The notes under the pieces: generated by a model
The model's database searches: none
Seen by the model: only the letters and a program-made list of their open reading frames with translations
What the model was told of the DNA's origin: nothing
Position numbers and translations under genes: made by a program
In this document: positions 1 through 26,859 of the stretch, piece by piece
How the letters are laid out: the number at the start of each line of letters is the position of its first letter
Numbering within the stretch: the stretch's first letter is position 1
NCBI GenBank assembly: GCA_964035545.1
Contig: OZ037770.1
Span: 6,272,729 to 6,336,728 of the forward strand
DNA length: 64,000 nucleotides
DNA from: Bugula neritina
Lineage: Eukaryota > Animalia > Bryozoa
Direction: 5' to 3'

Positions 1-1741
1 AAATTAAGTAAAAACCTAATTTTGAGATGTTTTTACGAATACCAAAAACACTTGATGACTTTATATCCTTGTCAAATTTGAAAAATGCATGTTCTTAAGC
101 ATGGTGAATGAGAAGCACTAATGACAGTGATTGGTCTAATTAGCGTTAGTGTTAATTACGTAATAAACATAATTAGCATTGTGTGATAATCACTATCACT
201 ATGATTATCATGTTCACGTAGAAATGCATTGCTATTGGATAGTTTGTAATGCTATTATAATTATATTGCTGAGTTAAACATATACTTTAGTTTAGTTTTT
301 ATGATTAGCAAACCTTCATTGTGATTATACATAATATTTGACAGTATTCTGGTTTTGGTTCATTTGTTTTTTCTAGTTCATTTGTTGCTAGAATCAATGA
401 TATTTTAACTAAGTTCTAGTTGAATTTTTAGATCTGGTATATTCATGTTTTTACTATCTCTAAGTTAATGCGGGAAAGAAATAAGATGTACTGAATCTTT
501 ATCAAAATCTTTTGCACTCATCGTTCTTATAAACTTTTTTCAGTCTATTCTTTTTTGAAATTTGATGTTTTTCGTTCAACATAATACATTTTATGTGAGC
601 CGAAAAATATCGGATTTTTTGACTGTGCTTTGAACAGTTGCTGGAAAGAAACATGAAACCTAGTAGCTTGCGAGTTTGCAAGTTTTGAAATCTTATGAAA
701 TATGATTAAATAATATTTAGTATATAAATTGTTTGCTTGAATCTCCGATTCTACTAAAGCTTTTCCTGATTTTATTATTCATCTGCCAGTTTGTATTTTA
801 AGTTTTACTTTAAAGTCAAGAGTTGTCTATTTTGTATCTTCTTGTGTCGTGTTTGTATTGCACTTGTTACTGTATTGTAGGTAGTTGGGAATTAACTGTT
901 CAATACCTGTAGTATTATAGTAACTAAGTACAGTGTTATATTCAAACAATATGTTGATTTATTGATTATCTATACACCCACAATAATACTAACTCAAATA
1001 CTAGTAACTAGTAATCATGTCTTTTATCTATGACTATTATCATTTACTGCTACAAATTTCACAAATTATATAGTTTTTATTTTGGAATTGGCTAAAAGAT
1101 TGAATGAAAAAATTGAGTTTGTAAAAGTATGTTAAATATAGTATATTTCTATTATAAGTAATTTTATATATGTAATAAAATTTTAGCTTAGTTTGATACT
1201 TTAATTCTTTGAAAAAAGAATTTAATACCAGTTAGTAATTAGCTGGGAAATATTTTAAAGTTATAAAACAAATTGAAATTAAATTTTGTTTTTATCATAT
1301 TTATGTTGATTTTGTCCGTGATTTAATGTGCTGTCATCTGGTGGTTGTACTTATTTATCAAGTTCTTCCGCTGCTAAAATTAGTGTATCCATATAATTAT
1401 TATGTACTAGTACTCTAAGTATAAACAACAGTCATAAAGTGGTTCAAGTTTTTTTTATTTCATATTAAGCAGATTAATATTCATCAGTTTGCGCATTGTT
1501 GGTAAAAAAATCTGTCTTTAATTTGATAACTTAAACACATGTCATTCATTCAGTGCGATGCAATAAGCTAGAAATTAGTTGCAGTTTTTATGAAGGCTAT
1601 GTGTCATTATATTATTTTGATTGATGTGTCTAATTCAGTGCAATTTCATCAAAGTAAGTTAGTTTATGTATAAAGTTATCTCCACCTAACAAAAGATGAA
1701 TAGGGTGAGTTTCCTAACGCAACTTTACACTATAATTTCAG

Positions 1742-4700
1742 AATCTGGTGGAGTGTTCACATTTGGTAAAAGCAAGTTTGCTGAAAACTTACCTAATAAA
1801 TTCTGGATCTGGAATGATGAAGTTACACAGGTGGCCTGTGGGGACCAACATACTGTACTCTATGCTGGTAAGTATGTATACTGTATATATAACTCCATCT
1901 GTATACAACACTCCCAAGGTTTTCTCTCTCGTCAACACACAGCAGTCATGTAATCATGTATTTGTTCACTTTTCCTATTATAAGCAATCATCTCGAATAA
2001 GCAATGTGTTTAGTATAAATATATATTTTTCTGTTCTGTCACTTATATGCTGCATATAGGCCTGTGTTCGAGTATAGAGGTGTTTTGTAGAGTCGGGCAG
2101 GGTATTTGTATTTGGAGATAGCTCATATGGTCAGCTTGGTTTAGGAAACACAAAAGCACAGACTAAACCAACTTGTGTCAAAAGTGAGATTTTATTGTTA
2201 TGAAAATTTATTCTTTTGATGTGTTATATCTATATTCATTACCCTGCCAAGTGTAATGTTATACTATAGTTTGCTATTAGATGGTATTATTTTGAGCATT
2301 TTATTTGTTCCAGGATTGGTTACTGTTACCAAATTACTTAGAAAATTTCTTCTTCTATTTTACTTTGAAATAATGAAGCCATTTTAAATTTTTAAATCAA
2401 AACCTGCCTTATCCTTCGATAGGTTTGCTGCAGCCTATTGATACGAAAGTGTATACAGGTAGTATACAGGTGTATATGGGTAGTATACAGGTGTATATAG
2501 GTGGTATACAGGTGTATATAGGTAGTATACAGGTGTATATAGGTAGTATACAGGTGTATATAAGTATTATACAAGTGTATATAAGTAGTATACAGGTATA
2601 TATAGGTAGTATACAGGTGTATATAGGTAGTATACAAGTGTATATAGGTAGTATACAGCTGTATATAGGTAGTATACAGGTGTATATATAGGTAGTATAC
2701 AGGTGTATACAGGTAATATACAGGTATATATAGGTAGTATACAGGTGTATATGTTTGCAGGTCTGAAGGGGGAGCAGGTCAGTGTGATAGGATGTGGCTC
2801 TGATCACACTCTAGTAGGCACATCCAGTGGCGTCCTCTTCACCTTTGGTAAGAATAACTACCATCAGTGTGGCTTAGACGCAGAGGGCAGCGTAGAGACC
2901 CCGACTGAAGTCTTACTTAAAAAGCCGATTGTCTTCACTCAGCTATGTGGAGGCAGCAGTCACTCTGTTGGATTAGATAGTCAGTATCATACCTTTCAGT
3001 CAGTAGTACTTTGACAGTGTTAGTTAGTCAGTAGTACTTTGACAGTGTTAGTCAGTCAGTAGTACTTTGACAGTGTTAGTTAGTTAGTAGTACTTTGACA
3101 GTATCATACCTTTCAGTCAGTAGTGTTTTGACAGTGTTAGTCAGTCAGTAGTACTTTGACAGTGTTAGTCAGTCAGTAGTACTTTGACAGTATCATACTT
3201 TTCAGTTATTATTATTTCTGAAAAATATGCTATTTTAATAGAATTACAACTAAAGGTGTTCTTTTCATAAATAACTAAATAAATTTAAGTGCCTAGCCGT
3301 CATTTATAAATTAATTTGGAAAATGGAGGCTTGGCTTAAATTAGCAATTTATTGTTTTATTTAGTTTGTCTCAAATTAATCAAATCATTACTCAAAGTGA
3401 ATTGAATTGTTTTTTTGTATTACATTTTCACTTATTTTGATTTGTGTTGCTAGTAGTTCAACCTATTAGTGTTCGTAACTATAACTAGTAGCCACAGGAC
3501 CATTTTCTCACTCTGGCATTAACTATCAATTCCTTATAGAAAATGGTTTGGTATATGTTTGGGGAGACAACTCTGAAGGTCAACTAGGACTAGGCGATGG
3601 GGTCTCTGAAGCTGAACTTCCTGAACAACTCAGACTAGACGAGAAGGCGGTTCATATTTCCTGTGGTTACTATCACACCGCAGTCGTCACAGGTTAGATG
3701 TCAATCAGTTCTAGTCACTTTTCTGGTCGTCATTGACTTCTTAATACTTAATTGTAGTGAAGTGTAAGAGTAATAGAATCATATGTTATATGTAAATCTA
3801 TTATATTACAGTAATATGTGAAACTAATGTATATAAGTAATATATATAATTAATACATGATGGTAATATATTAAAGTAGTATATGAAAAGTAATCTATAA
3901 AAAGCAATATAATATAAAAGTAATATTGTGATAGATTCTCATCCTCTACTGTTCTCAAGTAACTGCGTGTGTCAGTATTATAATTACTGTTGCGTATATT
4001 TTGAATGCTGTAATTGTAGCTAAGTTGCACTAGCTTTCTAATGTCTTATTATTGCGATTAAGCTTTCAGTATAATGTAATTTTCATTAAATACGCATTTC
4101 CAGAGTTATTTTCCCTTTTTGCTATTTCATCGTTTTGCATTAATACTGATACTGGAAATTTGTGTAGCTTTTATGAATGCCTTCAATAGGTTGTTATTAT
4201 AGCTAAATTCTTGGCCTATTGAATTATTCATTCTCCTTTGTCTATTTTTCTTTTGTTACTGTCAAGCTTAACTTTCTTTTGTCTGTTGGAACATTCTAGA
4301 TGTGAATTCTTGTGTATAAAAGCAGGCGAGTTTCCAGTGTAGATTCAGACTACTACTGGAGCTCGCTGGTAGTAGGACCACATAAGCTGTATCTGATACA
4401 ATAAAGGTTATCCTCATTTGTACTCAAATACTTGGCTTATTCTTTCTAGAGCATGTAGGCACTAGTTGCATTCAGAACCCACAAGTTTACTACAATATAT
4501 TAAAGTTATGATTTCAAATTCTGGGCACTATTTTGTAAGTGATTGTGTGTCCTAATTAACTTCTTAAGAAGAAGTCGGATAGTAATATGATGTAAAGTAA
4601 GTTACACATAAAACTAATGTATAAAAGTTATATCTTTAAAGGCGGTAAGCTTCCAGGTTATTTATTACATTTGAGCAAAAGTTTGCATGCTTTTCAACTG

Positions 4701-7700
4701 TTTTATCAGCATTTTATCCAATTTCTTATACGAAAACACTACAAAAATGTAAGTAAAAGTGGTCATATTAGGTGTCTTGGACTTGCCCAGACTTGCCCGC
4801 GAGCGTGCCCTCCGTGTCCTATTCTGACGTGGGGATGGCAAAATAGCCCTATTGTAGCGTGAGTTTATATCGCGTAAAGTTATTAAGAAGCGGGTTTGTC
4901 ACAGATTCTCGTTATTCGTAGTTCAAATCACATGAATGTTACTCTTCGGGCGGCTACTAATAACTAACGTTAGCTACGCAACATCAAGAAAGGTAACTAA
5001 TTTGACTGTTTTCAAATGGACTATTCCATTTCGCTAGTTTGTAACTTGCTGTAAATCACAAAATAATTATTTTCCCTATTTTAATTTCAATTATCATGTC
5101 GACCACACTACCAGAAAATTACTCTTAAATATGCAGTAAATGATGATTTTCAACCGTTTTGTGATGAATTATAGGTTAGTAGTTGTCTACGTAAAACCAA
5201 GTTTTAAAATTTGTAACTGAATCAGTGAAACTGAATCACAGTATCAGTATGACTATGAGTATCACTAGTCTATCACTATGTCTATGACTCTCACTCTAAC
5301 TCTAAGTCTATGACTGTCGCCTATTGGTGAACTATTATTAATAATATTCAATGGTTATATTTATTAATACTATTATCAGTCATAATGATAATCATATGAC
5401 AGTATCAGTTACGGAGCAGAATCAGTTTCGAAACTAATACTTATAATATTAGTTATAACTATAAGTATAAGTTATACCAATAGCTATATTTATATTAATA
5501 TAAATATTTATATTCATAGTAATACTAATAACAAATGTAAAATTATTATGTTAATAGTTATACTTGTAAGTTATAATATAAAACAAACGACACAAGTATT
5601 AATTTGAACTGCTGGTCTTAAAATAAAAAGTAAAATAAATAATAATATAAATAATGAAATATAAATTATAATAATTTAATTATACTAATACTAATAGCAA
5701 TACTTATACAGTAATATAATTATAATAAATTTATAAAACTTAAACAACTTTAAATTTAAGGAACAACTTTAAATACAAACAAAGATAATATTAAATAATT
5801 ATAATCATAATAATCATAACAATAAATATAATTATGATTCCAATAATTATCAATATATTATATAATATTTAAATTATTTTAATTTATAATTATAATCATA
5901 AATTTTATAGCTATAGTGAATAAATTCAATTTGACATAACTATAATATTATACAGCAGTCAGCCTATCTTTAATGCTGATTGAAATTCAGATTGTTATGA
6001 CTATATCATTATTCACTAACTCTAAGAGTAAGTGGCTACAATTATTAGTATCAATGTTGTGTTAGAGTACTATACCCATTGGAATTTTGATATATCCATT
6101 ATATTTACAACTCTGCCTGTTACAGCTATTAATAAATTGAACCAAAATACCAACAGTGCCTAATCATCGCCTTATTTATAAAATAATCACAATCATAATG
6201 CTCAAGTTAATAGATTGGAAATTATTGAAAATTATGTTGATGCCAATATAAATATGACATTGTATGCATCCAAGTAGTGATGTTGTAATATATCTTGGAA
6301 GATAATTACATTATAATAAGAGTTAAATTCCTCTAAGTAACTTTTTTGCAATTATTCCTTAGAATAACTATAACTTATACTCCTAACATTTAATAGCGCA
6401 TTAATTTTAGATTGAGCTACTAATTGTATTTATTGCATGTGAAAGTTAGTTATTCTCCGCCAGCTGCATGAATGTGACTGGTAAATTTTGTAACCTTTGG
6501 CAGTAATAACTTTGTAGCATAAATTAGACACATTTTTATGAAAATACATAATTTTAATGCTATAGCTGCTAGTAATTCTAATGGGTGTAATAATATTACT
6601 TTCACCAGCATTAATTTTTACTTTGTTCATGCTTCATAAAGCATTTTCTAAATTCTTTTTTGAATAAATATACATATAATGTGCTGAATAGATTACATAT
6701 GTTGGGGTTCTTCCTATACTGCAGCTCAGCCTACACTCCCCGCCACAAATGTTCCTAAACTACTAGCTTCATCAGGATACAGATTGATGGAGCTGTATTG
6801 ATAAAAACTTCTCTTTTTAGCAGTAGAGGCATCATGAAAAAAAAGGCAAGTATTTACTCAATAAGAATTCGGTTTTTTACTTCTACAAATTTGATAGCCT
6901 ACACGATTCTATTTAAATGGAAACTGGTCTGACATTATGTGTCTGCAATTTATTAGTTATAATATAGTAAATACTATGCAGGCCTATAGATCAAATGGCT
7001 CAAAAAAAATTAAATAAAACATTACACAATGCTGTATTTATTAGCAATGTAATACTTAGCAACTAATTTCACATTATTATTGTTTGCAAAGTTTCATACA
7101 TCTACATATGTTTGTTCAATTCAGTGTTCTGAAGTAGAAGGTTCCAACAGCAGGGAAAAGCCTTGAACAAGATATTATGTTCTACATCTCCAACTCATTT
7201 TAACTTTGCTGGTCAGTTCATTGTGTATCTGGAGCATAGTTTTGTATTTTCAAGTAGTCCATCAGATACCTTTGTAGATAGTAAAGATTAAAATGCTTGT
7301 GCAATGATGTCCATAATGTTGAACCGATTTATTGAAACTAAAACTGTTCTTAATTATAACAAAACTTGACAATCTTTACATAAAGAATAATGTCCTATAA
7401 TCTATCTTCATTGTAAACAAAATTAGAAAGTTCCACACCAGCAAATTGTTTATCATCATCTGTAGGTGGAAGACGCGTGCACTCAGTTATAAAGGCAAGC
7501 TGACAGTGGTTTTCTTTGCCTTCTATGAAGATTTGGAAAGAGCCAGAAAATTAATACTCTATAACTGCAAAACCATGTTGCAGTGTCTTGTTTTATTGAT
7601 TGAATCATCTAAAAGAAAAATTGTTGTATCATTATAATTTTACTGTTAATGAATTAGCAAATCTACTTATCTTGGTAAATATATTCAAGAACAAATACTA

Positions 7701-10700
7701 TAGTGTAACTCAGTTTTGGTTGTGTATGCTCCTTAAGCAAATTTACAGCAGATATCAAACTATATATTAGAGACTGATATAGGAATTAAATTTAAGCTAA
7801 CCATGATGATGTAAATAGCTGTTGTATGTGACTTCGAGAACTCTGCTGGCCATGTCAGTTCAAATACACCAGGGTGATCTGTTACGAATTTCATGTCATT
7901 ATTGAAATTCAGCTTTTTCAAGTGCCTCTTCACAACTCTGGCAGCATTCTGACTGCTCCTTAGCTTTCTGCGCCTGAAATTTCTTCTACTTGCACCATTC
8001 TTCTATTGGTGGAATGTTAGCCTATAACAAACAGGTGTACCAAAGCTAAAAAAATATCTAATTCACTGCACTAGGATATTATTCAACTCATTTAAATTTA
8101 ATATATAGCAGTAAAACAATCACATAATTGTTTTTATTTTATCAGCTTTACTTTACAAAGCTGAACCATATAATTTAGTAACTTGTCACCATAATAAACT
8201 TTGTACAACATACAAATTGAAAACCTGATGTGATTGCTTTTTTAATAGAATATACATCAAAAACATGTTACTTTGATAAGCGTGTTTATAATAAAAGTAT
8301 TAAACCAGTTTGAAAAAATTATTTTGTTATATAAGGGATCACAAAACTACATCATTTTAGACCTGTAGCTCAATGTTCCTCAAGCAACGGGCTGCTATGA
8401 CTAATTAATTTTCTATCATTGCATTTGATTGTTCTACTCATAGTGTATTGGCGAATTAAAATTATTGGTAATTTAATGTATATTTTAGCTACCTCTGTAC
8501 AATCAATGTCATAGTAATATCAATTAGGTTTTAAATTTCACTGAGTTTATAGTAAATTACTGCAACCGTTACATAACATTTGGCTAGTTCTCTAGTTCAT
8601 TAAATAACCATACGAACTTAAATTTACAACATGACAAAACACACAAGGCAAAATTAAAATAAGCATATTATGAACCAATGTAAACGATAAGCGATAATGC
8701 TGTTATAAAACATAAATTATCAAATTGAAATAGTTATTATTACTATTAGTATTAGTATTACTATCATTATAACAACTATAACTATTATTAGTATTACTAT
8801 TACTATTAGTATTAGCAAATTAGTAGTAAAAAATGAGTAGAGCTCAACATATACAATCTAGCTTACTATAAAAGTAGAAGTAGAACTTTTAAAACTATCA
8901 TCTGCATCATTATCAGAACTATGAGTAATACTAGTAGTTGTACTAATAGTAATACTAATTATTAATACTAATAGTATCACTATGAGTATGAGACTTGGGC
9001 TGGCATTGATCATCACTATCAGTATCAGCATCGTCATAGTCAAAAGTTACGAGAATTAGAAGCCATATTCATAGTGATAGTAATAGTCAATCATTGATTG
9101 AGTTACTGTCATAGTGATACTCATAATTAATTTATACGATACTCATACTCATAGTGATAGTGATACTTCACCGTGAATTTAATAATAATTTTAATTTAAT
9201 ATAAATATTATTATTATCATTGTTGCTAATATTATGTCTTACTCTTAGTCTAACAGCAGCTCTATGAAGAAGTTAAGCATAACTGATAACAAAACAAATT
9301 TAAAAAATAATACTGCAACAATCAATATAATGTATATCAATATGCTAGCAACCTAATTTTCAGCTCACTTCATTTAACTTTCCGTGCAGTATTGTGAATT
9401 GTGATGAAATAAATTTATTAATGGTGACCTTGACATCTTCGTCCAAATGCCTTTCACGTCAAGCCCCGAACCAATTTGTAAAAATTTTGGATTTTTTACT
9501 TTTGATTATTTTTTACGAAAAGAGCTTCAAAATAAATTTAAAAAAAAGTGGGCTGTTGTCGACATGAAAAGAAATATATGAGCTAATTTTCTAAATTCAG
9601 GAAGTTACCAGAGGGTCACAATATTTTTTTAAAAAAATCTTTATTTTCACGACAAGCTCTATTTATTGATATAGAAAAAAAGAAGACAAATCTTTTTTCA
9701 GATTTTTCATGTGCCACGGTCACGTCAATATCAGTGCTATTAACACATATATTTTAATTCATTTTTTCTGGTATATTGAGTTGAGATTTTTTGTATATAT
9801 TTTGTGAATGCTACTAAAAAAGCATGATCTTTTAATTAACAGTAATTGATTTTATCAAAATAACCTGGATGCTTACGATGTTTAAATGATTCTTAAAATT
9901 ATTATATGAAAAATAATATATTTATATAAAAACTTATATTTGAAAATAGTATATGAAAGCTAATACATAAAATAATATATACATATTGTACAGGAGCTGT
10001 TTCTTGGAACGCCAGTTGAGGCTAAATGGGTAGATGGCAATAGCTATGAGGCAGTGGTGATAGGTTTTCCACCAAACACAGAAAGAGTACGTGTGAAGTT
10101 TATTAATGATGGCATAAAATATTCAGCTCTGCCCCAGCATGTAACAACTTGCAGCAATAAAGGTACGATTATAAATATGATCATGATATTTATTATAATT
10201 ACAGTTTTCTTGAAACAAGTGGGTTGTTTTATCTGAATTGTTTTTCAATTCAATTTAAAGATAATGGAGTTTACAGTAAAATATTAATAAATAGCACTTT
10301 AAAATATTTTTTTTTGAGATATTAGGTATGACAACAGTCAATAAGGATTATACTTTTCGCAAAGGGCTTTACTATCAAAGCTAAAAAAATTCATTCGAAG
10401 TAGAAAAAAACATCTCTTTAATTTTCAACAGAATGTAATCTATTTAGTTCACAAATTATAGCTTGTTGCTAAAGTATTTCATAAACATTGCAGAGTCTCA
10501 GGGTTTCAAAGCTGGTTCCAGTTCTTCTTCCTCCATTGTTGGAAGAATGCCCGTTGCTGATGAAGAAATGCTACAACATAGAATGCAACTACCTGGTAAA
10601 TCTAAATTTTATTTATTGCATACAGCTATTAACTTTACCAAGGCTGCTTACAATGTGTTGGAATGCCGTATAGTATATGCACGCTGATAGAAATTGTGTC

Positions 10701-13700
10701 TCATGGAAGTAAAGATTTAATAATGCAGGTAATCCAAGGTAGTCTATTTTGTTCACAAGTTATAGCTTGTTGCTAAAGTATTTCATAAACATTGCAGAGT
10801 CTCAGGGTCTCAAAGCTGGTTCCAGTTCTTCTTCCTCCATTGTTGATAGAGAAATGCCAGGAATTGAGTCTGAGGGTGATTTTAATGAATCAGATGTTGA
10901 TTATAACCCAGCTGAAGAATTGTCATCAGAAAGTGATGATACAATCGACGAGGAATCAAGTAAGAAAAATCATTTTTTTAGATCTTACTGGTTTTGAAAA
11001 TATTTACTTCTTACAAGAAGGCAATAGTTGTCTATTTTCATTTTACTTTTAAATTTTATAATTAGTTCCAAATAAAATAACCTTTGAATAAAAGTGCAGT
11101 GGCAAGAGCTAGCTGTTACGTTTTTTATGACAATGGTGTATGCTTTTTTAATTGTTTACTGTTTTCAATACTTAAATTCAGCATAAAAATGTTGTGGCTA
11201 GCAGTTAATTTGCAGTGCTTATATTAGCCTGGTAAAACTTTCAAATAATAAACAGTTATTTCTACTTAACATAAATTGAGAAAATTGCCTAAAACTTGAT
11301 TTTGATAAGTGCTTTCCTCATTATTGGAAATAATTTTGTAGAAGAGTCATCTGGTTTGCAAGCACGGTCCACAGTGTCTGATGCAGATCATAGTAGGTTT
11401 AATAATTTGCATATTCCAAATTTGATGTCTTTCTGTGCAATTATGATGTTCAGCTTTTTTTGTTATACGCAACGCATTTTCAAATTAAACAATTGTCAAT
11501 TAATAAATTGATAGTTTTGGTGCACCTAGGGAGATATTGTTTTATTGGTGATAAAAATGATATTTTATTGTTGGAACATCTCAGTTATACATTTTGACTA
11601 AAAGAACTGAGCAAAAATGTAGCAAAGTACAAGAATTACTAAATTTAATAAAATTCTATTGAAATTATAATTAATAGTGCTTGATATACATGCTGGCTGC
11701 TGCAATTCACTTAATTTTTTTTTTTTTCAGTGCACACCCTAAAGACACGACTTCAAAATGGTAAGTCAGCATAAACCTATCGAAAATATTTACGGGGTGG
11801 GGATTGTAGTATAATTTGATGTCATCTAATTATGCAGATTATAGTGCCATAGATCATTAAAATGGGTTATGCCGGTTGACGTAACCTAAGTTTTAAAATT
11901 TCCCATACTTATTACTGTTCTTAACAACATAAATAACTGTGATCACGTTTTAAAATATCTGTTTTATGTAAAGTTTTGTGGCATCGTAGCATCTCAAGCT
12001 GTTGCAATGCAGAGTTACCGATGTAGTAATAATGACTTTACATAATAGTTAGTCAAATTTTGCAATAACATATTATTTTTTTTGTCATTTATAGTCGAAG
12101 TTCATTTGTACATAAAGGAGGGAAGAACAAAAGATTGCTCCAAGATTGATTATTGCTACTTTTGTAAGAAACCCATCAAGTCCAAGATATTTCGCCATTA
12201 CAAATCTATCCATTCAACTGAAGAGATGGTGAAGCAATGCCAAAGTAGTAATGACAAAAAAGAGATTAACTGAGAGTTGGAGAGGGTAAAGAACTTAGGA
12301 AATTTTGAACACAATGCAAAGGTGGGCTCATAATGTTTCACAAGTCTTCTAGATGTAGCAACTTGCAGTTATACAATTATCATAGCCACTTAAAAATGTT
12401 TTCTTGAATTTTTATTTAGGTACTAAATGATGGTCAAGGAGAGTTGGTGGTGATTCAACGCCCTTTAAAAGCTACACCAGCAGACAAGTATTTACCGTGC
12501 ACCTTTTGCTATAACTTTTATGCCAAAAAATCATTGGCTCGGCACATTGAGCGATGCACGTTCAACAAAGAAAAGGCATCAGGTAAAGCTGCAGCCAAAA
12601 CTGGCAGGGCACTGTTGTATAGCCATCTTACTACAACTACTGAGGGCGAACAAAGTTGGGCAGAGCTCGTGAGTGGGCTAAGCGAAACACACGCGAATCC
12701 AGGTAAACATTACTTACTTAATTATTAGAAATGTTTTTAAAACTGATCGTTTATTATTAGTATGTCAGACTAAAGTTGTTTTCACATTTTCAGAATTTTT
12801 CGAGTAGTAAATTAAATCTGGGAATTTTGGAAGCAAAGGTGTAATTGCCTTTTCAATTTGTTTTAAACCTTAGAAGCTAAAGAGATCGGTTTGCGCAAGT
12901 TCTTGAATTTTGTCATTGTATTAAAGCTTTGTGAGTAGGTAGCGATTAGTAGAAACTAAATGTTGAATTTCTTTTATGAATAAATGGATGCAAATATATA
13001 TAGCTCCAAATGTTTGAAATACAGCCCCTAATACTGCTAGAGTTTATTTATTGTGCAAAACTGACAATAATTGTACTATCTGGCGTCCAATCAAACTGGT
13101 GCTTCAACTTTATTTATTAATTCAAACAATCGCTGCACACACTGTGCTGCTCACACTGTGCTGCTCACACTGTGACAATTTTTTTCATTTATTGTAGGAT
13201 TGTACAAAATTATAAAAACTGATCCTCTCATGTGAGAGCTAGGAAAGGCTTGCTAATAAGAATGAGCGACAAGACATTGAGACGCCCCGGTACAGCAGAA
13301 CTCAACCTTGTCAGAGGGAAGCTTAGATTCGTGGCAAGATTATTTATCAAAGTGCAAAATCGCTGCAGAGTTAATACAGTATCAGAAATGTTAGATTGTA
13401 AGCATTTTGATCATCTACTTTGTGCCGCTAGGGAAATGTCAATGGACAATACCCAAATTGGGTTAACAATTTGAAGCAGCTCAACATCATAAAACGATCA
13501 TTTGCTATGAAAGCAAAGGATTCACAAATGAAAGAAGACTGTGATGACTTTATGTGGCACATGAAGCAAAAGTGCGCTAATTATGTGGCAGAAATTGCGT
13601 CAAAGAGGCACAAATTGAAAACATTGAATAAGCCTCAAGAACTTCCTCTAGACAGAGACTTGGACACTCTAACAAACTATTTAAAAAAGAAGTTACTGGG

Positions 13701-16700
13701 TTTTCAGAGCCTCGCACCATCTGAAATAGCAAAGCTCTGCCTCACATATCTATTTTGTTTAACAAAAGAAGACCTATGGAAGTCGCAGAGCTGACAACAA
13801 GAAACTTTTTAGAAGAGCTAAAAAAACCCAAGAGGACCATCAGCAAATTCTTGCATCATTGGATGCAACCGAAAAAATCAATGCTGCAAGGTTAGTTTCT
13901 ATTTACTTATTCTGTCAAAGCTATCATACAAATTTGTTGACTGATTTTAAATTTTTGTTAGCAATTCAATATCTGCTAACTGAAAACTTCAATTTTAGAA
14001 TTGTAATTGTTTTAGAATGAAAGCAATAGAGGTTAGAGCGAAGTCAACAGGGCCTCTATGGAAAGTATTTATTTTGATCTCTGAGTTCCTGATTAGTCCA
14101 CTTAAGCAACTATCTAGCTTAAACCGTCAATTTCTGTTTGAAAGGTAATACAATTGAAAATTATCAGCCACTTTTATATATTAAAATAAAAAGAATTTCA
14201 AATGTATCGACCTAAATGAACATTTTTGTTATAAATTTTTTTGCATTCTGTAAATGCAACAGAAGAAACGTAAGTTTATTGCTTCTAAAGTACTATATAA
14301 TTTTTTGGCTTGTTAATAAGTTATAAATCCTCAAATACACGGTGTCCACACCTTACATGATGTACCTATTTTAACATGCTATTCATTAAAAATTGTTGTG
14401 CTCATTTTATAACTTTCATAAAAAAAGTTATTTTATAGTTGTAGCCAATACTCAACTCGGCCCCCTTCTGGTACAGCATTAATAAAGGAAGTTGGGGGCA
14501 GCGCCCATACCTTTTGCATGCGCAAAAATTTAGAAAGTTCTTGGCAACAATGTGTCAGGTTGGTTATTTAGTTTCGTTTTCATTTAAATTTTTTACATTA
14601 GCAAAAACCACAAACAGATTAGCACGTTAAAGTAACAAATTATATAATACAGTCATAGCAATTTATTGTAAAGTAAATTTTTATGAGCTTGCAGCTAATT
14701 CTTATGCATCTAATTTTCTAATATACTTTGGAAATTGAACCTTTGTTGTATTGCAGCTTAATAGCCAAATATTTTAATTTCAGACCAAAAATCTTGACAA
14801 AAATGAATTAGAGATGATGGCTGATCATCTGGGCCACTCAGTGAACATACACACTTCTGTCTATAGGCTCCAATCTAATTTAATTGAATGAACAAAAGTG
14901 GCCAAAATTCTAATGGCTATTAAAAATGGAGGCATTGTGAAGACTGCGGAAGCAAGGCAGCTAGACGAAATAGAAGTTCCTGTCAATGGTAAACTAACAT
15001 ATCCTCAACATTGCAGCTACAATGCATATACTTATGATTTTAGAATTTGCTAAATGAAAAACTCAAGTGCATTTGCAAAGATTACTTTTGTGCATTATTA
15101 CCATGCGTGCATTATTTATCTAAAAATCTAGATTTTAAAAGTATTTTGAGATGCTAATTATATATAATAGTCCCCATAAACTATCAAGAGTGTTTTAAAT
15201 ATTATAGAATTGATAGAAGAGCAGCCATCTGCAGACGTGAGACTTGCCAGAAATGACGAAACAGACTGTCATATTGCAGAAGGTAAGCTTGTGCAAGTTA
15301 GTGTTGTAAGTTAAAAAGATTTTGATAACCAGACTTACAAGACAACTGCGATCATTTGCAAAAGTATACTTATCACGTCAAAAATAGGCTGGCTAATTGT
15401 AAATGTAGTTTCTTACTTATAATTTGAAAACTTTTTTAGATACATCAATACCAGATACTGAAGCAATGGCAAAGTCTAAAAGAGGTAAATATCGTTTAAT
15501 GACGGAGTTTCAAAGCCCATAAATTTAACAGGCTGCATACATAATATTGTTGTGATTTTGCGGGTTATGAGGAATAGACTAAGTAGTCTGCATGCCAATT
15601 ATTATGATGAAATAAAGAATCTTGTTAAACTGTAATTAATAGTCTTTATTGGTTCCTTCATGTATCAGCTCCAGTGTAGTACTGATTTAGATTCGAAAAA
15701 CTCGCACTTACATATGGTGGAATTCACGCCACTAATGGGGGTCCGAAACTCATACGAAGCTCGGAGTTCCACCAACCGACATCGAGGGGAACCTGTCCGA
15801 TCTCAGACAGGATCCCATCCGATTGAGCAAATCTATTACAATATGTAGTTGTGGTTGTATGATGCCTAAACCACTAACAGTGGTTTTGAGAACTTTTACT
15901 AGTAAAACAATCCATACAATAGTGTTTCATCAATAACATGTTGATGAACTTTTCAGTGAAACCATACTGGAGTGAAGCAGAAAAGCGGTTGTTTGAAAGC
16001 ATTCACACAGACCACAGTAAAAACTTGACTAAAGAGCAGTTTTCTCAGCTGAGAAGCATGTTCAAAGACAGGAGCGATGCTGTAATCAGAGCCAAGGCCA
16101 GCCACCTGAAAAAAACGCTGTCTCAGGAAAGTCGAAAATAGCTTGAACTTAAACCTCATTACACAACTAACTTAACTTGACTCCAATGTTACTGCGTGGA
16201 TTTACAGCTTTCTTACAAACAGAGTAGTAGGTAAATGGCATAACATCAAATCCTTTATAGGTATTATTTGGTTAAAATGAGGCTGTGGACTATATCTCAA
16301 AGACTAATGGTATTTTTACTAGGCTTTTATTGAGACAATTTTTTCTAACTTGCTACTTTTTTGTTGCAATCTTTTAGGTAAAACTTAATTGAGGTGTTCC
16401 AACAATAAAATACCATTTTTACTATAAATAAAACAATATCTCCTTAGATGCACTTGAACTGTCAATTTATCAATTGATAATTTTTTAATTTGAAACCGTG
16501 CTGCATATAACAAAAAAGGTCGTAAAGCTGAAAGTCATAATTGCACAGAAAGACATCAAATTAAGTATATGCAAATTAATAAACCTACTATGATCCGCAT
16601 CAGACACTGTGGACTGTGCTTGCTCATATGAGGCACTCATAGTATACATCAACTCATATGGGGCAGATATAGTATACACAGGCTTATGAGGAGGGCATAC

Positions 16701-17670
16701 AGCATATATGAGCTCATAAGGTGCACATATAGCATATATACAAGCTCATAAGGGGAAAATATAACATAGTATCTAGGCTCATAGCGGGCATATAAATAGT
16801 ATATGAGCTCACAGATGGCACATAAAATATATATAAGTTTATAGGGGGCAGATATAGAATATATAAGTTCATACACAGGATAGTTAAGGGCAACCTTTTA
16901 GCTGCAACTACCTTGCTGAGGTTCGCATTGTAATCATATAAGAATTCAGTACCAGTAAAATAAAATCTCACCTAATTGTGCTAGAGTCAAAATTTAAAAA
17001 CTATACTGTAGATCTTCTTTTTCTCCAGGGTAAGTTTTTTGGAAATTTCAATTTTCATTTTTTTTGCAAAGTTATAGACAAAAAACTGCCCAATTTTGGC
17101 CAATTTTGCCTGAAAAGCTGACTTTTCAGTACCAGTAAAATATCTCAGCAGCAAAGTATGATATCTGAATAAAAATTGCACTGCTGGAATCCTGAGATAT
17201 TTCTCCAGGGTAAGTTTTTTTCTTTTTCCAATAACTCTTCTAGATTGCCCACAAATTGGTGATTTATACATTGAAAATGCCATATTTTTTCATAGTAAAT
17301 TAGCAGCGCGCAGTGCTTCACGCTTCAATGAGCACGTAGGGATGAGAAGATATTGGCGCGTACATGCTAATTATAGGCTTGCTAGCCGACAGGCTACAAT
17401 GAATAGCTTGCGTGGTACTTTGTTTATGTAGCGCCTATAATGGAATGTTGATAGATAACACAGCCCTAATGAAGGTTGCTGCTTATTGGTTGTAGTTTGA
17501 TCTTAGGCTAAACAATTGCAAGTAGGCAACACGCATGCCACCCGCAGAGTAGTATTATTCAAGAACCTAAACTACATTTTGAGAGAAATTTATGATATTC
17601 TTAGTGAGGATGCCCTTAACTATCCTGTGTAGGGGGTAGATATAATATATATAGGCTTATGCGGGGGCAG

Positions 17671-17718
<48 letters not shown>

Positions 17719-18783
17719 TTCATAGGGGGGCACATAAAATATATATAAGTTCATAGGGGGCAGATATAAAATATATAAGTTTATAGGGGCAGATATAATA
17801 TATATAAGCTCATAGGGGGCAGATATATAATATATAAGCTCATAGGGGGCTGATATAGAATATATAATTTCATAGGGAGCAGATATATAATATAAAAGCT
17901 CATAATGGCAGATATAATATATATAAGCTCATAGGGGCAGATATAAAATTTATAAGCTCATAGGGGGCAGATATAGAATATATAATTTCATAGGGAGCAG
18001 ATATAGAATATATAAGCTCATAGGGGCAGATATAATATATATAAGCTCATAGGGGGCAGATATAGAATATATAAGCTCATAGGGGGCAGATATAATATAT
18101 ATAAACTCATAGGGGCAGATATAAAATATATAATTTCATAGGGGGCAGATATAGAATATATAAGCTCATAGGGGGCAGATATAGAATATATAATTTCATA
18201 GGGGGCAGATATAGAATATATAAGCTCATAGGGGGCAGATATAGAATATATAAGTTCACAGATGGAACATAAAATCTATATATAAGTTCATAAGGGGCAG
18301 ATATAAAATACATAAGCTCATAGGGGCAGATATAGAATACATAAGCTCATAGGGGCAGATATAATATATATAAGCTCACAACAACTCAAATATAATTTTT
18401 AGCGAAGATGCAGGCCAGAATTCTATACAAGTTCTACCTCAAGCTCTGGCACAATTATAGCAACTGAAATGATATTATTATCACTGTAATTAAATGTTTT
18501 CAACAGTGAAAAAAACTTTACATTAGTTTTGGGGAAGATAACTCCCTAATTTGATTATTTATAATACCATAGGGGGCTTTTTGTATATATTTACAGAGCC
18601 CCCTCTGGTATTGGAAAATATCAAATTGTCCTTCTGTGAGCCTATTTTTAAAATAGTGTCTATATTCCATAACAGACTGTTCTTAGTAATTTAAAACCCT
18701 CAAACATGGTGCCCCCTATGGGCATAGAGCCCCCTATGGATGTTATACATACCAAATTGACCACCTATGAACCCACATATGAA

Positions 18784-24108: not shown

Positions 24109-26859
24109 CATCATCATCATCATTAGCTGTCCTTCGTGTCCGAAGATGACTTCCGGTGAATCATGGTCCTCCATTTACATCTGTTTTGCTGAGAGATTGC
24201 CAGCTGCCAATAGGGATCCTCAGGTCTTTTAGATTGCGTTTAACGGTATCTTTGAATCTCAGTTGCGGCCTGCCAACACCACGGGTGCCTTCTTTCAGTT
24301 GTGAATAGAGAATTTGTTTAGGTATTCTAGAATTATCCATTTGATGCACATGACCAGCCCATCTCAGGTTTTTTTGAATGAGTAGTTCATACATGCTGGG
24401 TAGATTTGCCTGTGCTAGAGTCTCCTCATTCGAGATGAAATCCCACCACTTCACGTTCAAGATCTGGCGTAGATGTCTCATCATATAGGTGTTGAATTTG
24501 TGAGCGACTATCCTGTATACAGGCCAGGCCTCCGCTCCATAGAGCAGAGAGGACAGGACAATGGCTCTGTACACTGTACACTTGGTCTTGAATGACAGAT
24601 CCTTATTGTACCACACTTTGGTCTTTAGTCTGCCGAATGAGATTGAAGCATTGGACATCCTTGTATAAATCTCTTCATCCATCTTGTTGTTGCACATCAC
24701 TGTAGACCCAAGATATTTAAACTTATTGACGTTGGCAAGGTCTACATTATCTATGCAGATACTGTCACCACCGTCATGGGCTCCAGGTGCCGGTTGGTAG
24801 AGCGTTTCCGTTTTCTTGATATTGATCTTCAGACCAAAAGCTTTGGACGCTCTGGCGAGTCTGTCGACTAATTCCTGTGCATCGCCATGGCTGTGTGCAA
24901 TGAAGGCAGTGTCGTCAGCAAACATGAGTTCTCTAACCAATACTTTCTGTATTCTTGTTGTTGACTTGTATTGGTTCACATTGAACAGATCAGCTCCAGG
25001 TCTACTTTGAATCCAGACGCCTTTATCACAGTTTTCAAATGCGTGCTGTAGAACAGCTGATAAGAAAATAGAGATTAGCGTTGGAGCCAACACACATCTT
25101 TGTTTCACACCATTGTTGACCTGGAACGACTCAGATAGCTCCTCCTTCAGCTTGACTGAGGCCTTCATGCCAGTATGGAGAGCGCTGATAAGATTGGTGA
25201 AGTGACTGGGAAAACCGAGTTTCTGTAAGATCTTCCACGGGGTCGCCTGATCAACAGTATCGAACGCTTTAGTGAAGTCAATGAAGACTATGTACAGGGG
25301 CATATTTTGCTCGATGCATTTTTCCTGTATCTGCTTCAGTGCAAATATCATGTCCGCTGTTCCCCTTCCACGACAGAATCCACACTGAGTCTCGGGTAGG
25401 AAGTTTTCTGCATATGATGTCAGTCTATTTAGAAGGACACGAGCAAAATCTTTGCCGGGAATTGAGAGCAGGGAGAGACCTCTGTAGTTACCGCACAGCT
25501 TCCGATCACCCTTTTTGTAGATGGTTATAAGTTGGGCATCTTTCCAATCTTGAGGGACTACAGCAGTTTTCCATGCCTCCTTTATTATCTCATGGAGAGT
25601 ACTTATTAGTTTGGGCCCTCCCCTTTTGATAACCTCAGAGTGAATACCATCAGAGCCAGGTGATTTCCCTTCACTTAGCATCGAAGTTGCCTTGATGATC
25701 TTTTCAATATCTGGGCATTCGTTCATCCAGTTCTGAATGGGAGCTTGTCTCAGGTTCTCAATGATGTTGTCATCAATATCTGGAGTCTCGTTTAGTAGCT
25801 TGCTAAAATGCTCTGACCATCTCGCTAGAAGATCTTGTTTTTCTGTCAGGAGTGTTGAGCTGTCACTGGCCAGGAGCTGGTCAGGATGACTCACTCTTGG
25901 ACCCCAAACAGTTTTCGTGCTTTGGTAAAAGCCTTTCATGTCGTTAGTGTCAGCAAACCGTTGCAGTTCAGCAGCTTTTGCCAACCACCAGTCGTTCTTG
26001 AGCTCCCTGCATCTTCCTGTGAGTTTTCTGCCAGCCATTCTAAGCTTTGACTTGTTCGAGCGAGTATTCCTGGTTAATATGTCTGCTCTGGCCTTGTTTC
26101 TCTTCTGGATGAGTTCTTGAAGCTCATCATTATTCTCGTCAAACCAGTCCTCATGCTTCCTGCTGACAGTGCCGAGGTGCACTTTTGACTCTGCATAAAC
26201 TATCTCTTTGAATGCTCTCCACTTATTCTCTACGCCCTCTGGAGCAGAGTTCAGTTTCCCAGCAAGGGACTTTTCCAGTTCTTCTCTTACTTCCTCATTC
26301 TTAAGTCGAGAAACGTCCAGCTTCTGGCAAGGTGTTCTCCCTTTCTTCATTTTTCTCCTCACTCTGAGCTTAGCTTTTGACCTTATCATGATGTGGTCAG
26401 TACTGCAATTCGCCCCTCTCATCGCCCTTGTGTCCAGAATGTCTGGTAGATCACGTTGTCGTGTGATAACAAAGTCGATGAGATGCCAGTTCTTGCTTCT
26501 CGGGTGCATCCAAGAAAACTTGTGAGCTGGTCTTTGCTTGAAGAAAGTGTTGGTAATTCACAGTTGATGTTCACTACAGACTGAGATCAGAAGTTCACCA
26601 TTGGAGTTCAGGTTTCCGCAGCCATACTTGCCTATCACAACGGGCCAGGTTGAGTGATCTTGTCCAACCCTAGTATTGAAGTCCCCCATGAGTAAGATCT
26701 TATCAGCTGCTGGGACTGATCTTAGAGCCTGATTCAGTTGGTCATAGAATCTGTTGATGTTTTCTTGGCTGTTTGTCATCGTGGGAGCATAGACAGCTAT
26801 CACAGTGCACCATCGCTCATCAGACAGAGGAACCCTGAGTGACATCAGTCTGTCACTTA
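24109..26859 (-). mobile_element. RTE-clade (BovB-like) non-LTR retrotransposon, 5'-truncated
   Basis: APE + RT reading frame 26845-24161 (WMHPRSKNWHLIDFV..RAMRGANCSTDH, NYRGLSLL, QCGF, FIDFTKAFD, ELMFADD, LRWAGHV). One in-frame TGA at 26558 and a 3' frameshift. (GAT)n 3' tail at 24109-24123. Flanks ACTGTTACTACA / ACTGTAACTACA look like a TSD. Confidence 0.95.

Follow-up and report, generated by a model that had tools for sequence, protein, structure and literature searches.

A probable decayed copy of a Crypton-type tyrosine-recombinase transposon beside a Tudor-like exon in Bugula neritina

The window analysed here is a stretch of 64,000 nucleotides (G000:C6:6272729-6336728) from the 216-Mb AT-rich genome of the bryozoan Bugula neritina. 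A chain of exons on its plus strand, at 9994-16141, had been taken in a first-pass annotation for an intron-rich, metazoan Crypton-like integrase with a Tudor domain at its N-terminus. The data described below suggest that positions 10798-16141 (+) are probably a decayed, intron-bearing copy of a Crypton-type tyrosine-recombinase DNA transposon, and that the Tudor-like exon (E1) lies outside the element. The Crypton-type assignment of the first-pass annotation is thereby kept, but its Tudor module is not, and the annotation would be corrected from a Tudor-guided integrase to a dead transposon copy next to an unrelated exon.

The encoded protein is predicted to consist, in this order, of a short acidic N-terminus, a C2H2 finger, a C2HC finger, core-binding and catalytic domains, an acidic linker, and a single Myb/SANT-like helix-turn-helix tail. 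In relatives that are intact, element or target DNA may be bound by the Myb-like tail together with the fingers, and the recombinase would cut and rejoin DNA via a 3′-phosphotyrosine intermediate. Such an element would leave as a circle and integrate at a short preferred site; the 3′ junction of the element in the nemertean Lineus longissimus is at (TA)n. The family documents a recombinase transposon lineage with two fingers and a Myb-like tail that extends over several phyla, with members in molluscs, one nemertean, one crinoid, and one bryozoan.

Exon Structure, Transcripts, and Decay

Exons were called by six-frame translation and direct reading. The chain turned out to comprise 12 exons and one alternative partial duplicate (E2a), every one of which is bounded by AG and GT (Table 1). 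The chain and the coordinates of the first-pass annotation are confirmed, whereas its number of about 14 GT-AG exons is not. The duplicate is explained by a direct repeat of 94% identity (10432-10546 and 10736-10850), in which the beginning of E2b recurs as the first ~50 nt of E2a, together with 60 nt of the intron that precedes it.

RNA contigs from four RNA-type runs of three studies were aligned to 9985-15984. They contain nine junctions in the recombinase part of the chain: 11760>12095, 12321>12420, 12702>13198, 13890>14016, 14144>14439, 14558>14784, 14988>15208, 15282>15440, and 15484>15957. Six of these are listed as GT..AG in the joint table; the remaining three (12702>13198, 13890>14016, and 14558>14784) were deduced from neighbouring pieces of one 2223-nt contig. 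This contig and the shorter ones remove exactly the predicted introns from E3 to E12, and the splicing model is therefore right for the recombinase part. The E6-E7 join of an annotated B. neritina protein (P0004) is likewise identical to that of the window model. The RNA contigs are ~4% different from the window and have one extra base after 13246 and ten at 13470. Since they hold bases that the window lacks and are divergent to this extent, they derive from a less damaged copy or lineage and not from the window copy.

The window copy is incapable of transposition, having accumulated three in-frame stops and four frameshifts under neutral drift; the earlier statement that this copy is dead is borne out by these lesions. 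The stops are TGA codons at 12271 (E4), 13233 (E6), and 14889 (E9). The frameshifts, mapped against other copies, all fall in E6, near 13246, 13470, 13752, and 13821. Stop 12271 and shift 13246 are common to the window and a copy at C6:6.207 Mb (C6a) that lies 77 kb upstream and is 97% identical. The pair therefore came from DNA duplication of a copy that was already dead. Stop 12271 is not present in the B. neritina orthologue described below. The lesions at 14889, 13470, 13752, and 13821 are found in the window copy alone, the other copies having CGA, AGA, or AAA at 14889.

Table 1. Exons of the window locus, the retroelement remnant in its last intron, and related loci in Bugula and Lineus. 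Joints are given as the last position of one exon > the first position of the next.
Feature	Position	Strand	Observations
E1, "Tudor-like" exon	9994-10162	+	56 codons, open frame; Pfam Tudor_2 sub-threshold; RNA joint 10162>10798
E2a, alternative exon	10494-10595	+	RNA contigs cover 10492-10595, both ends continuing into sequence foreign to the locus
E2b, acidic exon	10798-10959	+	in-frame ATG at 10855; RNA joints in from E1 and out to ~11342
E3, 30-nt linker exon	11731-11760	+	joint 11760>12095 in 4/4 RNA runs; frame fits E2b and E4
E4, zinc finger 1 (CxxC-x10-H-x4-H) and GNFEHN motif	12095-12321	+	aligns with P0053 145-209; in-frame TGA 12271
E5, zinc finger 2 (PCxxC-x11-H-x3-C, C2HC type)	12420-12702	+	intact frame; aligns with P0053 214-309, E 9e-13
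E6, core-binding (N-terminal) recombinase domain and first catalytic Arg/Glu	13198-13890	+	pieces collinear with P0053 312-548
E7, beta-hairpin lysine	14016-14144	+	aligns with P0053 551-582; RNA joints on both sides
E8, second catalytic Arg	14439-14558	+	aligns with P0053 621-640; Gln at the position of the classical HxxR His
E9, LGH...IH...VYR (His and nucleophile Tyr)	14784-14988	+	aligns with P0053 640-704, 61% identity, E 3e-14
E10, acidic linker	15208-15282	+	joints 14988>15208 and 15282>15440; kept in copies C5, C6b, and C4
E11, linker	15440-15484	+	joint 15484>15957; kept in copies C5 and C6b
E12, Myb/SANT-like tail and stop codon	15957-16141	+	aligns with the conserved family tail W..E..RS..IR.K
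Solo long terminal repeat in last intron, not part of the element	15558-15839	.	missing in C4, C5, C6b, and the B. neritina orthologue; inserted in this copy only
First Bugula subfamily	window; C6:6.207 Mb; two copies at C5:11.55 Mb; C6:6.81 Mb; C4:23.41 Mb
Second, more divergent Bugula subfamily	C3:22282329 (22.28 Mb); C2:21893296-21898133 (21.89 Mb); C1:13670170; C3:4084765; probably C2:12.08 Mb		tandem partial copies at C2:21.89 Mb
Lineus loci (L035-L039)	OU342997.1; OU343001.1; OU343006.1; OU342999.1; OU343002.1

Recombinase Core and Protein Family

The nature of the core was addressed at the level of the protein family. An AlphaFold model of the member P0047, calculated with 32 family sequences, reached a predicted local distance difference test (pLDDT) score of 82. 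Its top Foldseek matches are only XerA, XerH, XerD, Cre, the Tn1549 integrase, and the lambda integrase. In VIA-align, XerH scored Z 12.5 and both the integron integrase IntI and Cre scored ~11, over both domains, with type IB topoisomerases at Z 8-9. Pfam Phage_integrase was recognised below threshold in four family members (E 3e-5 to 5e-4). The core is thus predicted to be, at fold level for the family, a two-domain Cre/Xer-like tyrosine recombinase. The window exons align collinearly with family proteins, E4-E9 following residues 145-705 of an 853-residue Lineus protein (P0053) and E12 aligning with the family tail. The tyrosine-recombinase reading of the first-pass annotation is supported by these comparisons.

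Six family columns are near-invariant, namely the R and the E of FNKRRxxE, the K of VRGK, the R of LRK, the H of GH, and the Y of VYR, and the window retains all of them. The consensus around the second catalytic Arg, in the E8 region, is IRTRLLRKYLATT. Among the motifs singled out earlier, FNKRR, R-A-K, LGH..IH, and VYR align with the near-invariant columns, whereas MRK was read in a wrong frame, the homologous motif being FRK.

Searches that started from the window itself returned little. Pfam applied to 15 exon pieces of the window gave a weak Tudor_2 match only, and a word search with the exon-6 piece gave Bugula fragments only; Bugula neritina proteins match fragments of the window feature at 80-97% identity. 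An exhaustive search was run with P0001, a natural 156-aa fragment sharing 80% identity with exon 6 of C6a. This search retrieved 68 proteins, and a word search with one full-length match added 39 more. The homologues are hosted by Lottia, Crassostrea, Ruditapes, Mercenaria, Mya, Dreissena, Tegillarca, Elysia, Aplysia, the nemertean Lineus longissimus, the crinoid Anneissia, and Bugula, and several of the 90% clusters have 26-36 members each. Public protein sets contain the family without a name, its members standing there as uncharacterised proteins.

The family members have a common architecture. It begins with an acidic N-terminus (D-Y-x-P), a CxxC-x10-H-x4-H finger, the GNFxHN motif, and a PCxxC-x11-H-x3-C finger. 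These are followed by the core of ~400 residues, an acidic linker, and the tail RKRW..EE..L..F......RS..IR.K.NN..LGK. Both Cys/His fingers claimed for the window were recovered, as CxxC-x10-H-x4-H at 12095-12321 and CxxC-x11-H-x3-C at 12420-12702, and the W-containing end proposed earlier aligns with the tail conserved across the family. Neither the window exon nor the family proteins gave a Pfam match for a Myb/SANT tail. When the PDB was searched with the family profile, Myb, TRF, TBF1, Reb1, or SNAPC4 accounted for seven of the first 10 matches to the tail, all weak (E 0.18-1.8), and in the Atlas search all 10 leads belonged to the Myb clan, with scores of 0.80-0.87. No description of an architecture combining two fingers, a recombinase, and a Myb-like tail was found in literature searches.

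Mobility in Lineus and in Bugula

Evidence for mobility of the family was found in Lineus longissimus. The gene encoding the 853-aa protein is one intronless, apparently intact frame, and it is part of a unit of 9-10 kb that occurs with 98.5-99.8% identity at five loci on five chromosome records (Table 1); one of the copies lies within an fn3 gene. The unit has one long open reading frame (ORF). Its other ORFs are at most 214 aa, and two of these run antisense inside the long one. No reverse transcriptase (RT), terminal inverted repeat (TIR), or long terminal repeat (LTR) was found in the unit, where inverted pairs do not occur and the tandem repeats are either internal or on the 5′ side. On the 5′ side there is a variable array of 519-bp repeats, within which the 5′ junctions vary; they are not at (TA)n. 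The 3′ end is common to four of four copies: it reads ...GGTACTAGTAAG and is followed by (TA)4-7 or a longer TA-rich tract, and then by unrelated flanks. Because the gene is intronless, the near-identical units are spread over five chromosomes, and a single ORF without terminal repeats shares a common 3′ end, the family behaves in Lineus as a mobile, single-ORF, multicopy, repeat-less DNA element, like a Crypton. Being young, apparently intact, and intronless, the Lineus element is suited to testing eukaryotic recombinase transposition and (TA)n targeting.

The absence of further genes bears on the possibility that the recombinase gene of the window comes from a DIRS/Ngaro-type retrotransposon or from a large DNA virus that has integrated. 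These also encode tyrosine recombinases, and nimavirus recombinases with a C2H2 finger are known to target repeats (PMC10871703). The repeated unit, however, lacks RT/RNase H and other viral genes, the Lineus element is one ORF devoid of split or inverted terminal repeats, and the only RT of the window belongs to an unrelated long interspersed nuclear element (LINE) on the other strand, 8 kb away. Such an origin is therefore highly improbable.

The Bugula genome contains at least 10 family loci that fall into two subfamilies (Table 1). Nucleotide alignments among the copies pass through exons and introns alike, the intron positions are common to both subfamilies, and every Bugula copy examined has stops or frameshifts. 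The orthologous locus was found in the B. neritina assembly GCA_010799875.2, on a contig (L034) that has both flanks in common with the window at a Kimura two-parameter (K2P) distance of ~0.05-0.06. K2P distances from the window, given for exons/introns, amount to 0.027/0.029, 0.112/0.116, 0.131/0.122, and 0.208/0.169 for copies and to 0.061/0.053 for this orthologue. Since exons and introns have diverged equally, the copies of the window family appear to be in neutral decay and not to represent a domesticated gene under purifying selection. A single-copy, syntenic domesticated gene, which the first-pass annotation had named as the finding that would overturn its view, is at odds with at least 10 loci, of which all copies examined are broken, and with this divergence pattern. 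One paralogue, at C2:12075000-12080000 (L027/L028), has both zinc fingers and the Myb-like tail and no detectable recombinase exons between them.

Similarity among copies on three chromosomes ends 5-10 nt past the stop codon, while the neutral introns still align. A boundary so sharp and so close to the stop argues for the edge of an element rather than for a duplicated gene with a 3′ untranslated region. No TA tract was found at the 3′ boundary of the Bugula copies. An inverted repeat (11358-11587 and 16386-16623) was considered as a pair of element termini and rejected, because at least 20 copies of this repeat are dispersed in the genome.

The copies could also be pseudogenes of a domesticated, intron-bearing host gene family that arose from an ancient recombinase element and was spread by segmental or tandem duplication. 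Their low number, the ~10 spliceosomal introns at conserved positions, and the transcription and splicing of related copies would fit this explanation, as would the tandem copies at C2:21.89 Mb and the origin of the window/C6a pair by local duplication of a dead copy. However, exon and intron divergence is equal in every pair with no trace of purifying selection, no copy examined is free of stops or frameshifts, and the 3′ boundary recurs on several chromosomes. Moreover, the catalytic residues are kept, unlike in DUF3504-type domesticates, and the same family forms a young multicopy element in Lineus. Descent from a host gene is accordingly considered unlikely, and a decayed transposon copy remains the preferred explanation.

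Several observations weigh against this preferred explanation. As regards the enzyme, the fold assignment is made on the predicted model of the homologue P0047 and not on the window protein. No recombinase was retrieved when the family alignment was used as a sequence profile against the PDB; the matches were C2HC-finger look-alikes at E ~0.7. The classical HxxR His is not conserved in the family, where the position, aligned by motif and not by superposition, is occupied by R, T, or Q, the window having Q; the catalytic competence of even intact members is therefore putative. As regards mobility, copy number is low in the Bugula genome and the 5′ extents of the Bugula copies differ (window-equivalent 12129, 12994, and 13410), with no 5′ terminus or target-site duplication defined. 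Mobility in Bugula is deduced from the behaviour of the family in other phyla, together with the 3′ boundary that the copies have in common. TGA 13233 is common to the window, C6a, and chromosome-5 (C5) copies, so some spread must have taken place after inactivation, by trans-mobilisation or plain duplication. As regards the first exon, RNA contigs from one sample (X1 and X2) splice E1 to E2 (10162>10798, GT..AG) with anchors of 22-30 nt, and the frames of E1, E2b, E3, and E4, as read from the sequence, are compatible. Finally, a relative from Mya arenaria (P0110) carries an N-terminal SET (KMT5A-like) domain.

The Tudor-like Exon

The last three points are those on which a role of E1 in the recombinase would be based. 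According to this alternative, the Tudor-like exon was captured in frame at this locus, as a lineage-specific event, and serves as a genuine N-terminal reader that tethers integration to marked chromatin, in parallel with the SET fusions of molluscan and chordate relatives. E2b, to which E1 is spliced, has the acidic motif typical of the family, and E1 would thus be attached to a real element exon. The other Bugula copies are all 5′-truncated, which makes the absence of E1 from them uninformative. In addition to P0110, the ESM-Atlas clusters closest to the recombinase model include two chordate ones (52 and 482 members) in which 92-99% of the proteins have SET, with template modelling (TM) scores of 0.69 and 0.47 by query. 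N-terminal chromatin modules thus occur in the family, and there may be a SET-recombinase element family.

The properties of E1 itself are less favourable to such a capture. Against Pfam Tudor_2 the exon scores E 0.003 and 17.6 bits vs. a cut-off of 31.4, covering 20 of the 35 profile positions. Atlas language-model leads are mixed, pointing both to Tudor/Agenet and to the KIF2A N-terminal domain, and a single-sequence AlphaFold model (pLDDT 55) is unusable. A word search, limited by its length window, gave no homologue. The exon is single-copy, its sole genome match being itself, and the same is true of the E2 region. No Tudor domain was seen in the ~20 homologues scanned with Pfam. E1 is missing from the Bugula paralogues, and the upstream exons of the second-subfamily paralogue at C2:12.07 Mb are not Tudor-looking. 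At the orthologous B. neritina locus, contig L034 cleanly joins window position 4494 to 11386-11389, and the whole 6.9-kb interval 4495-11388 with E1, E2a, and E2b is absent, through either an insertion in the window or a deletion in L034.

The transcripts do not connect E1 with the recombinase either. The E1-E2 joints come from a single sample with short anchors, and the first 50 nt are common to E2a and E2b. The only exit joint of E2b in the RNA contigs shown leads to an AG at ~11342 within a dispersed repeat, where the frame ends after ~55 codons; this repeat, one of the two copies described in the last section, is thereby exonised. E1 joined to recombinase exons is seen in no RNA contig shown, and the 2223-nt recombinase contig (run X5) opens with 130 nt of an unrelated young transposable element (TE), not with E1 or E2b. 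No convincing coding segment exists between 3695 and 9993, and no upstream ATG exon for E1 was found. An RCC1 exon that ends at 3693 in phase 1 was tried as a splice partner of E1; it is out of frame and runs into a stop after 8 codons.

Comparison with relatives also places the start of the protein further downstream. The ATG of E2b at 10855 is followed by an acidic D-Y-x-P / SES motif; P0053 and P0103 have the same motif at a distance of 10-30 residues from their first residue, and in P0104 and P0051 it is located deeper in the protein. Judging from the sequence, the native recombinase protein most likely starts in E2b, downstream of E1. Some transcripts splice the Tudor-like exon onto this putative first coding exon of the element. 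E1 is most likely a locus-specific exon, which may be chimeric and 5′ or have come as a fragment from a different gene, and not a module of the element. Its capture as a reader is improbable, and would be rated lower still if SET-bearing relatives did not exist.

Consequently, the Tudor domain cannot be upheld as an element module, the exon being single-copy, sub-threshold, and absent from homologues and from the orthologous B. neritina locus. The idea that it guides integration loses its basis as well, since E1 is not a defining module of the element. The data hint at fusions of the recombinase with chromatin modules, for example SET, in its relatives. If the Tudor capture were true, the family would repeatedly gain chromatin-writer or chromatin-reader modules that could steer integration to marked chromatin.

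Comparison with Known Systems

Crypton DNA transposons were reportedly described by Goodwin et al. in 2003. They possess a single tyrosine-recombinase gene and no RT, TIR, or LTR, are multicopy, and occur in animals; movement as DNA allows them to have introns (Kojima and Jurka 2011, PMC3212892; PMC13465315). The Bugula/Lineus family is similar in that it also has one recombinase gene, lacks RT, TIR, and LTR, and is multicopy. Accessory DNA-binding domains vary among Crypton groups, and those of the window family are the two N-terminal fingers and the Myb-like tail. In contrast to Cryptons, the window family, as aligned by motif, appears to lack the His of the R-H-R-Y tetrad. By profile comparison, the family would fall outside CryptonA, because none of 20 family proteins matched DUF3504 at E up to 0.01-0.05.

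CryptonV elements (Kapitonov and Jurka 2012, Repbase Reports; cited in PMC8869645) are a lineage of recombinase DNA transposons reportedly described from cnidarians, some families of which insert in microsatellites. The Lineus 3′ ends at (TA)n in four of four copies resemble them, by description only, whereas the Lineus 5′ junctions are not at (TA)n and the Bugula 3′ boundary has no TA tract.

The Crypton-derived host genes ZMYM2/3/4, QRICH1, KCTD1, and KIAA1958, which are characterised by DUF3504, are also intron-bearing animal genes that combine a recombinase-derived domain with zinc fingers. They are, however, conserved, single-copy, and under selection, and have lost the catalytic residues, whereas the Bugula copies have kept these residues, decay neutrally, and show no DUF3504 match.

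With XerH, XerD, Cre, IntI, and lambda Int the family shares the two-domain fold and the order R..E..K..R..H..Y. Identity to these enzymes is only 10-16%, and the window family differs in the additional fingers and Myb-like tail and in the replacement of the HxxR His. The chromodomain integrases of Ty3/gypsy chromoviruses are comparable in the idea of a histone-mark reader fused to an integration enzyme, a parallel to which the relatives with N-terminal SET belong. Those integrases are of the DDE enzyme class, though, and the putative reader exon of the window has an uncertain fold and is joined to the recombinase in no RNA contig shown.

Genomic Surroundings

Upstream of the locus, window positions 1690-3693 (+) hold host-gene exons with RCC1 repeats (Pfam RCC1, E 4e-15 and 2e-11). 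The dispersed repeat mentioned above is ~150-260 bp long; its two inverted copies are located at 11343-11600 and 16350-16623, and the E2b transcripts splice into the first of them. A long degenerate tandem array with a ~30-nt period follows at 16615-18400. The B. neritina orthologue has it downstream as well, and it is also seen close to the copy at C6:6.81 Mb. The LINE-type RT, unrelated to the recombinase element, is an open 782-aa ORF at 24161-26509 (-) with RVT_1 (E 2e-29).

Three 30-mers from loose ends of RNA contigs were examined as clues to the locus and were discarded: one lies in the unrelated young TE, one is absent from the genome, and one falls in an Ig-domain gene dissimilar to the locus. 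The 5′ end of the 2223-nt contig stems either from a chimeric transcript driven by the TE or from a chimera made in the assembly. The young TE in its 5′ 130 nt occurs at seven loci, including C2:9482111, C2:13514373, C3:29776872, and C5:5975338 (L029-L032), and the four loci compared are 99.2-99.6% identical over >2.2 kb. The solo-LTR sequence of the last intron, which belongs to an abundant LTR retrotransposon, has at least 99 genomic matches, many of them in same-orientation pairs 6.35 or 7.45 kb apart.

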